NCBI GenBank assembly: GCA_951804945.1
Contig: OX638149.1
Coordinates: forward strand, 77,066,001-77,130,000
Reading direction: 5' to 3'
Origin: Podarcis cretensis
Taxonomy: Eukaryota
DNA: 64,000 nucleotides
A program made the position numbers and the translations under genes. Shown here in pieces: positions 35,381 through 36,531 of this stretch. Numbering within the stretch: the first letter of the stretch is position 1; every line of letters begins with the position of its first letter. The notes below the pieces were generated by a model. That model searched no databases and was not told the DNA's origin. It saw only the letters and a list, made by a program, of their open reading frames with translations.

Positions 35381-36147
35381 AGGCTCCTCTCTTTGGAATT
35401 CTTTCTCTCTCTCTCTCTTTTTAAAAAAATCCATCCTCATCTTCATTGATAGTGTCTAGGAAGCTGATGCTGAGTTGAGTGAGTGAGGAGGGGCAAGAGA
35501 GAGGGAATGACAGAGAGGAGTTGTTGTTGTCAGACAATACCGCAAAGGACTTTGGCAGGGATCAACAGAAGACAGTGGGGAATGGGGTTGAGGGGGAGAA
35601 GAAGAAGAAGAAGAAAGAGAAAGAGAGAGGGAGAAAGCAGGAGACGGATGGGTCAAGCTCCCCTGCCTTTCCCGGGGTGTTGATGAACTCTGGGGCTGCT
35701 CTGTGTGGGAGGCGAGGGAGGGGAAGCGGAGCAGACTGCGGGAGGGAGCTGGGACACCCAGCTGCAGGGAGACCAGGAACTGTTACACTGCTGCATACAT
35801 TAATGACTGCTCAGTGTGCCGGAGAAATACTCCTTGGCGGTTGGTACATGTGTGTAAACAGTCTTCTCTCTCTTCCCTCCCTGCCTGGATACGCTATCCT
35901 CCCTCTCCTCTGCTCCTCTTTTCCTCCCCAATTGTGTACTGCCCTATCCTCTGCCTTAATCCTCTTCTTCCCCCTCTTCTTCTTCTTCCCTTCTGATTCC
36001 TGCATCCTTGCACTCTCTGTTTTTCTCCCACCTCTTTCTCCTTCCTGATCCTCCCTGCCTGCCTGCCTGCCTGCCTCCTTCTTCCCCGTCTTTCTCAGGG
36101 GATCACACTTTGCTGGGATATAGTTGTGTAAACTGGGGGCTGCCACC

Positions 36148-36318
36148 ACGGAGAGACCACAGGAACCCCCCTTGGGCCCTCCATGTCCCTTTGACGGGGC
36201 CTTTTGGACTCGAAGACCCCCCCACGCCCCCCAGCAGGGGTGCTTTGCTTGCATCTCCAAGACGCCCCCTGCACAGCAAGGATCGCCGGTCCTGTCTCCT
36301 TCTTCTGCCGTTTGCCTC
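36148..36318 (+). CDS. IFITM10: Putative non-AUG (ACG)-initiated N-terminal extension of IFITM10 (57 codons)
   Basis: In frame with the IFITM10 AUG. GCCACC-ACG-G Kozak context, in-frame TAG at 36121-36123, no in-frame AUG. Encodes PFDGAFW...GCFACISK, similar to mammalian IFITM10 as recalled from memory. Confidence 0.55.
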
Positions 36319-36531
36319 ATGGAGAACAAGAGCTGCAAAGGGGACAGCCTGCGGCCACCTGTCCAATGCAAACACTCTGTAGAGAAGAAGACGATGACTA
36401 ACCCCACCACGGTGATTGAAATCTACCCAGACACCACCGAGGTGAATGATTACTATCTCTGGTCCATCTTCAACTTTGTATACCTCAATTTCTGCTGTCT
36501 GGGATTCATTGCCTTGGCATATTCTCTGAAA
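36319..36531 (+). CDS. IFITM10: IFITM10 coding exon (MENKSCK...[29 protein letters not shown]), CD225 domain N-half
   Basis: Near-identity to the IFITM10 CD225 domain with the palmitoylated CC motif. Donor AAA|gtaagt, phase 0. Likely exon acceptor tttctcag|G at 36098/36099. The CTSD-IFITM10 synteny is conserved. Confidence 0.93.

Follow-up and report, generated by a model that had tools for sequence, protein, structure and literature searches.

A conserved N-terminal extension of IFITM10 that lacks an in-frame AUG in Podarcis cretensis and may be initiated at an ACG codon

Among N-terminal extensions initiated at a codon other than AUG, classic CUG examples include those of FGF2, MYC and PTEN-L. 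IFITM10 is, to our knowledge, the most conserved and the least understood member of the IFITM group. In the literature it has been described as a classical two-exon protein of 120-130 aa (Hickford et al., 2012; PMC3424830). The gene analysed here agrees with that description in its AUG at 36319, its two coding exons, its CD225 domain and the location of CTSD upstream of it. However, the description leaves out the 57-65 conserved codons that precede this AUG and that are clearly under coding constraint.

Conserved non-AUG N-terminal extensions of vertebrate proteins make up the PhyloSET, in which HES3, TRPC1 and PELI2 are cases of ACG codons (Fedorova et al., 2022; PMC9789052). As in the PhyloSET cases considered here, IFITM10 presents an in-frame AUG-less open reading frame before a conserved AUG, with constraint at the protein level along the extension; furthermore, the 5′ edge of conservation is marked by a near-cognate codon whose Kozak context is strong, and two isoforms are expected from leaky scanning. 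Unlike those cases, the IFITM10 region is annotated in many species as AUG-initiated via upstream exons, and it is known here from sequence alone.

Long IFITM10 isoforms have indeed been annotated (189-238 aa in mammals, birds and reptiles; 228 aa in primates), and they have in common with the gene studied here the extension from A-T-T-E or S-T-T-D onwards, as well as the first coding exon and the CD225 core. The difference lies in their starts, since the annotated long isoforms begin at AUGs located in upstream exons that are unrelated between lineages, whereas the exon described here has no AUG and carries an in-frame TAG behind a strong acceptor. A literature search retrieved no paper joining IFITM10 and non-AUG initiation, and among the best-ranked papers for ribosome profiling, translation initiation or near-cognate together with IFITM10, none mentions this gene. 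Likewise, IFITM10 is absent from the supplements of PMC11317171, and in the supplements of Fedorova et al. (2022; PMC9789052) it appears once, in an unrelated table, and not in the PhyloSET rows examined. It must be considered that the human annotated CDS already includes the extension region, and therefore screens starting from annotated AUGs would not flag IFITM10.

The window, i.e., the whole stretch of 64,000 nucleotides of Podarcis cretensis DNA that was analysed and to whose numbering all positions refer, contains the following elements of the gene:

36124 to 36318, + strand: AUG-less open frame of 65 codons, 57 of them counted from the ACG; Pro/Cys-rich N-terminal extension
36133 to 36135, + strand: CTG, alternative near-cognate start in good context (A at -3, G at +4)
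36139 to 36151, + strand: extended Kozak-like context GCT-GCC-ACC-ACG-G, including a unique 10-mer and coinciding with the jump in identity to birds
36148 to 36150, + strand: ACG, candidate non-AUG start; in-frame Thr, codon 9 of the open frame, for a product of 177 aa
36319 to 36531, + strand: core of the first coding exon, from the conserved AUG; first half of CD225
59776 to 59925, + strand: last coding exon, 49 codons plus TAG; second half of CD225

By its sequence, the 36121-36321 stretch belongs to IFITM10, where it forms the 5′ portion of the first coding exon. Orthology is indicated both by protein identity and by synteny with CTSD. The window gene is 96-99% identical to lizard IFITM10 proteins (99% between its exon and the UniRef Podarcis IFITM10) and 85% identical to bird proteins, and cathepsin D exons lie upstream on the same strand, at 18228-26565, with both aspartic-protease active-site motifs and the C-terminus present, an adjacency that agrees with the mammalian neighbourhood. 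The two coding exons were run separately, not joined, in the Pfam and database searches. Against the CD225 profile (PF04505), exon 36124-36531 matches positions 3-30 with 29.5 bits (cut-off 27.1) and exon 59776-59922 matches positions 31-68 with 25.9 bits, while the Pfam search of the N-terminal extension (36124-36318) matched no family. The first coding exon ends with AAA/GTAAGT at 36531/36532, the GT of the donor being at 36532.

An earlier note made from the letters of this DNA had described the 36124-36318 frame as open, devoid of in-frame ATG and closed on its 5′ side by the TAG at 36121-36123, with a near-cognate CTG in frame at 36133 (aaaCTGg) and the AUG at 36319 in the context ctcATGg, and had predicted a product of 177 aa if translation begins at the ACG, as opposed to 120 aa if it begins at the AUG. 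All of this was confirmed, the lengths being obtained with exon 59776-59925. The in-frame near-cognate codons of the open stretch are TTG 36124, CTG 36133 and ACG 36148.

Searches with the exon protein recovered 130 IFITM10 proteins, and the part upstream of the AUG can be aligned in squamates, tuatara, turtles, crocodilians, birds, marsupials and placentals. Identity in the extension reaches 85-99% to sauropsid IFITM10 and 59-69% to its mammalian counterparts, with a single in-frame indel of four codons that sets placental mammals apart from sauropsids and marsupials. The IFITM10 motifs quoted in the earlier note for human match non-human mammalian IFITM10 proteins. Orthologous nucleotides were rebuilt by combining wrong-frame ORFs, retrieved through searches with antisense and +1 translations of the exon, with the residues of the IFITM10 frame. 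This procedure fixes most nucleotides, and its sources were two snake contigs (antisense), one other lizard (+1) and six birds (+1); the search for wrong-frame ORFs yielded no mammal, turtle or crocodilian. Over codons 10-65, the comparison of the window with the other lizard gives a dN of 0.009 and a dS of 0.22 (in the extension, one non-synonymous versus about eight synonymous changes), that with snakes a dN of about 0.05 and a dS of 0.4-0.7, and that with birds a dN of about 0.19 and a dS of 0.6-0.8. The claim that the extension is conserved is thus borne out by a dN/dS of about 0.04-0.3 and by its alignment across amniotes, and these comparisons clearly mark the extension as protein-coding sequence under purifying selection, which is certainly translated in amniotes.

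Amphibian IFITM10 proteins begin at a Met homologous to AUG 36319, and hence this AUG is, judging from the proteins compared, the ancestral tetrapod start, the extension being an amniote-specific addition. The 28 nt that precede it (36291-36318) present 91% identity between the lizard and the six birds, and the third positions of codons 57-65, i.e., the nine before the AUG, are identical in 30/30 window-versus-bird comparisons, above the rest of the extension. This suggests that there is a nucleotide-level constraint around the ancestral start codon. Such strong conservation of Met 36319 and of the preceding 28 nt is what continued use of the AUG through leaky scanning would lead one to expect. 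The unusual conservation of third positions in these 28 nt, together with a TAG at 36121 that is in frame behind a strong acceptor and the lack of any AUG, would also fit a situation in which the extension is no longer translated in Podarcis cretensis, its conservation being due to a recent loss or to an RNA-level constraint in the leader of the 120-aa form. Nevertheless, we regard this as very improbable in view of the 65 codons free of frameshift or stop, the 99% identity to the Podarcis protein and the low dN (0.009) at a dS of 0.22 against the other lizard.

Two long ORFs in other frames also run over the exon, one at 36008-36382 (+1 frame) and one at 36106-36603 (antisense). Six birds and one other lizard also have an open +1 frame (176-225 aa), and dual coding was considered on this account. 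It was rejected; with 54% identity versus 82-85% for the IFITM10 frame, the openness of the +1 frame probably just follows from Pro-rich coding. An out-of-frame ATG in poor context, located between the ACG and AUG 36319, opens a 3-codon ORF (36183-36194, stop TGA), and this ATG is absent from the rebuilt bird sequences.

The exact Kozak consensus with ACG in the place of AUG, which the earlier note had located at 36142-36151, is indeed present: GCCACCACGG (GCCACC-ACG-G) occurs once in the 64 kb, both strands considered, versus 0.06 occurrences expected. Furthermore, similarity had been claimed to begin at the T-T-[D/E] codons, and amniote conservation was found to start at the A-T-T-E codons, within three codons of the ACG. 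When this boundary is measured on 21 lineage representatives, ungapped and anchored at the Thr codon, between-clade identity is 5-18% at codons -14 to -4 and 61%, 28% and 53% at codons -3, -2 and -1, and it reaches 100% both at codon 0, the Thr/ACG itself (21/21 representatives), and at codon +4 (Gln). A similar profile arises at the nucleotide level between the window and birds, with identities of 44% in codons 2-5, 89% from -9 to -1 of the ACG, 100% in the ACG plus G, and 84% in the next 49 nt after ACG-G.

The rebuilt sequences read GCA-GCC-ACC-ACG-G in the six bird contigs and GCC-ATC-ACG-G in the two snake contigs, and the context of the ACG in the other lizard is the same as that of the window; in addition, a gecko model annotated in the +1 frame (P0021) implies ACG-G. 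For mammals, turtles and crocodilians the site is known at the protein level only, as Thr followed by Glu or Asp. A purine at -3 and a G at +4 are found without exception in about 60 proteins. A point against the ACG is that its position is occupied by Ala in one tinamou model; another tinamou has Thr. The check that had been proposed, invariance of RCC-ACG-G, came out positive but weighs little. The ACG is kept in the rebuilt sauropsids, but its third base is no better conserved than the background: among codons for the same residue, the third position agrees in 70-78% of cases in birds, 64-78% in snakes and 88% in the lizard; with a background already at 64-88%, the synonymous-site test of the ACG is uninformative and carries little weight. 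The GC stem to which the earlier note had pointed 3′ of the ACG did not prove special, and an RNA stem downstream of this codon was rejected, as 36148-36230 folds no better than shuffled sequences (z = 0.01).

We infer, as a plausible reading to which somewhat less than an even chance is given, that the long IFITM10 form of Podarcis cretensis starts at ACG 36148. Part of this reading is that the mature IFITM10 mRNA would carry no in-frame upstream AUG. On leaders of this kind, scanning ribosomes would initiate inefficiently at ACG 36148, which is in a full Kozak context, with CTG 36133 as a possible minor initiation site. Initiation at the ACG would produce the 177-aa long form, and most of the ribosomes would leak past it to AUG 36319, giving rise to the 120-aa form.

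CTG is generally the most efficient near-cognate codon. It could then be argued that non-AUG initiation takes place mainly at CTG 36133 (aaaCTGg), or at another near-cognate codon, and that the context of the ACG is a coincidence. The CTG has A at -3 and G at +4, it would be met first by scanning ribosomes, and wherever the nucleotides could be determined, L-C-K-L-G is identical in the window and in the snake contigs. However, the Leu encoded by CTG 36133 is kept in squamates only, being different in tuatara, turtles, crocodilians, birds and mammals, and between-clade conservation starts only at -3 of the ACG, so that main initiation at the CTG seems improbable to us.

The start at ACG 36148 must be weighed, in turn, against the ways in which the exon can be entered and against the upstream exons that could supply an AUG, for which these features are relevant:

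36097 to 36098, + strand: AG of a textbook 3′ splice site, with a long pyrimidine tract and cag/G; the exon would start at 36099
36121 to 36123, + strand: TAG, either a stop within the exon (exon beginning at 36099) or a weak 3′ splice site supplying its AG (exon beginning at 36124)
34614 to 34757, + strand: candidate first exon 1a, with ATG 34614 (G at -3) and donor CTT/GTGAGT; homologous to a bird first exon
35693 to 35737, + strand: match to the N-terminus of the Podarcis model, 15 residues at 100%; Met-less, with no ATG, and followed by GC, not GT

Entry at 36098/99 leaves the in-frame TAG at 36121 within the exon, where it cuts off any AUG farther upstream. As estimated with a crude matrix, this acceptor scores 15.1 bits and the one at 36123/24 scores -0.1 bits. 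No other AG is found within 35950-36096 upstream of the 36098/99 acceptor, and the homologous acceptor is used in gene models of turtle, emu and tinamou.

The main alternative to the ACG start, a serious possibility held at clearly less than even, is that a first exon farther upstream provides an ordinary AUG (here ATG 34614, with donor 34757) and is joined in frame to the exon through the weak acceptor 36123/36124. In that case the TAG would be intronic, the protein would have about 233 aa, the ACG would be a conserved Thr at the start of the functional part, and the variable N-terminus would represent tolerated junk; it would all amount to ordinary alternative first-exon usage, the annotations being merely untidy. 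This view is favoured by the squamate gene models of two pipelines, more than ten of which enter the exon right before L-C-K-L-G, i.e., at acceptor 36123/24 (Varanus, both in NCBI and in UniRef, Elgaria, Anolis sagrei, Podarcis, Eublepharis, Gekko, Thamnophis, Pantherophis, Pituophis and Naja). Through this same acceptor, ATG 34614, with its G at -3, is in frame and exon 1a yields the product of about 233 aa, and in-frame AUG first exons recur across bird orders and palaeognaths. Vipers also speak in its favour: they carry Tyr at the TAG site, a sense codon without the AG, and their models read through from the strong acceptor.

The upstream-AUG explanation, however, has to rely on an acceptor that is nearly devoid of a pyrimidine tract (-0.1 versus 15.1 bits). 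Moreover, the N-termini it would bring in are non-homologous between close relatives and may reflect model building driven by ORFs, and the argument that the frame is kept suffers from ascertainment bias, since protein models are in frame by construction and species with a broken frame are annotated as the short form. As regards exon 1a, the frame in which it resembles the bird exon changes after N-S-S, and therefore neither its reading frame nor its peptide is conserved. The Podarcis model itself has no Met, and the short form alone is annotated in many species. Were exon 1a joined to acceptor 36099, it would contain a 58-codon uORF that ends at TAA 36129-36131.

Some additional variation at this border bears on the start as well. 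In favour of the ACG, one snake contig (P0127) has lost 2 nt from the G run that follows L-C-K-L and precedes the conserved part. Against it, antisense ORFs of non-viper snakes imply an AG-type or a stop codon at the site of TAG 36121, which seems to be kept, and emu uses two acceptors 18 nt apart, both of them in frame.

The earlier note had cast doubt on the upstream-AUG annotations of other species, and this doubt finds support in that annotated N-termini upstream of the boundary are wildly heterogeneous and non-homologous between lineages. Unrelated N-termini are found even between two Anolis species and between two Varanus models of different sources, as well as among mammalian orders. 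The Podarcis IFITM10 model lacks a Met, and its upstream exon has no ATG in the window. Only the 120-aa form is annotated in Pogona, Python, Paroedura, Salvator, Emydura, Carettochelys, Alligator mississippiensis and many birds, and many of these annotations are RNA-informed (Pogona, Python, Paroedura, Carettochelys and Alligator mississippiensis). In birds, two in-frame AUG-bearing first exons recur across orders and palaeognaths. Among snakes, models P0003, P0004, P0143 and P0146 have in common an upstream exon with an AUG (K-G-K-P-Q-D-D-P-I-A-F...), for which the window has no equivalent, and, after A-G-A-G, viper and elapid models seem to read the same DNA in two frames, paired with the two different acceptors.

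The initiation at ACG put forward for Podarcis cretensis could be extended to all amniotes, mammals included. The long IFITM10 would then start at a conserved ACG, decoded as Met, and coexist with the short AUG form through leaky scanning, while the heterogeneous N-termini with upstream AUGs would be artefacts or minor forms. In this general form, the proposal is rather unlikely in our judgement. Its consequences deserve attention, since hardly any two species agree in the annotated N-terminus of IFITM10, and earlier studies deal with a protein of 120-130 aa. If the ACG start were true, there would be one true IFITM10 N-terminus across all amniotes, and expression constructs and antibodies designed from the starts now annotated would be wrong. 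The stringency of start-codon selection, which can be regulated, would determine how much of the long form is made relative to the short one. In addition, screens for non-AUG initiation would be missing those cases that are hidden in CDSs with spurious upstream AUGs. IFITM10 would thereby join a known class of conserved non-AUG N-terminal extensions, the chief import being a correct definition of the IFITM10 protein.

Upstream of the exon, a further element of the locus stands out:

33500 to 35300, + strand: CpG-rich region, with a CpG observed/expected ratio of 0.66-0.81 for the most part and of 0.42-0.46 at 34.5-35.0 kb, versus 0.0-0.43 upstream of the region

This region is probably the IFITM10 promoter, with several alternative first exons. 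Indeed, different segments of it match first exons of other sauropsids: 33942-34028 corresponds to the annotated first exon of Gekko japonicus; 34285-34332 to that of Elgaria, with a strong donor AAG/GTAGGT at 34332; 35097-35151 to that of Eublepharis, with the common start M-R-T-Q-Q-N at 35097; and 35265-35290 to bird and Anolis first exons, with an M-D-G start near 35265. Taken as sequence similarities, these matches suggest the existence of multiple alternative first exons. Closer to the coding exon, a block at 35679-35921, which includes the upstream exon of the Podarcis model, is conserved with the contig of another lizard (59% in translation over about 80 residues). The exon itself is preceded by a pyrimidine-rich tract of more than 200 nt (35860-36096), the last 147 nt of which (35950-36096) are AG-free. 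A (CCTG)n run is located inside this tract, at 36056-36078, and a (GGCA)n run is found at 34825-34855, within the CpG-rich region.
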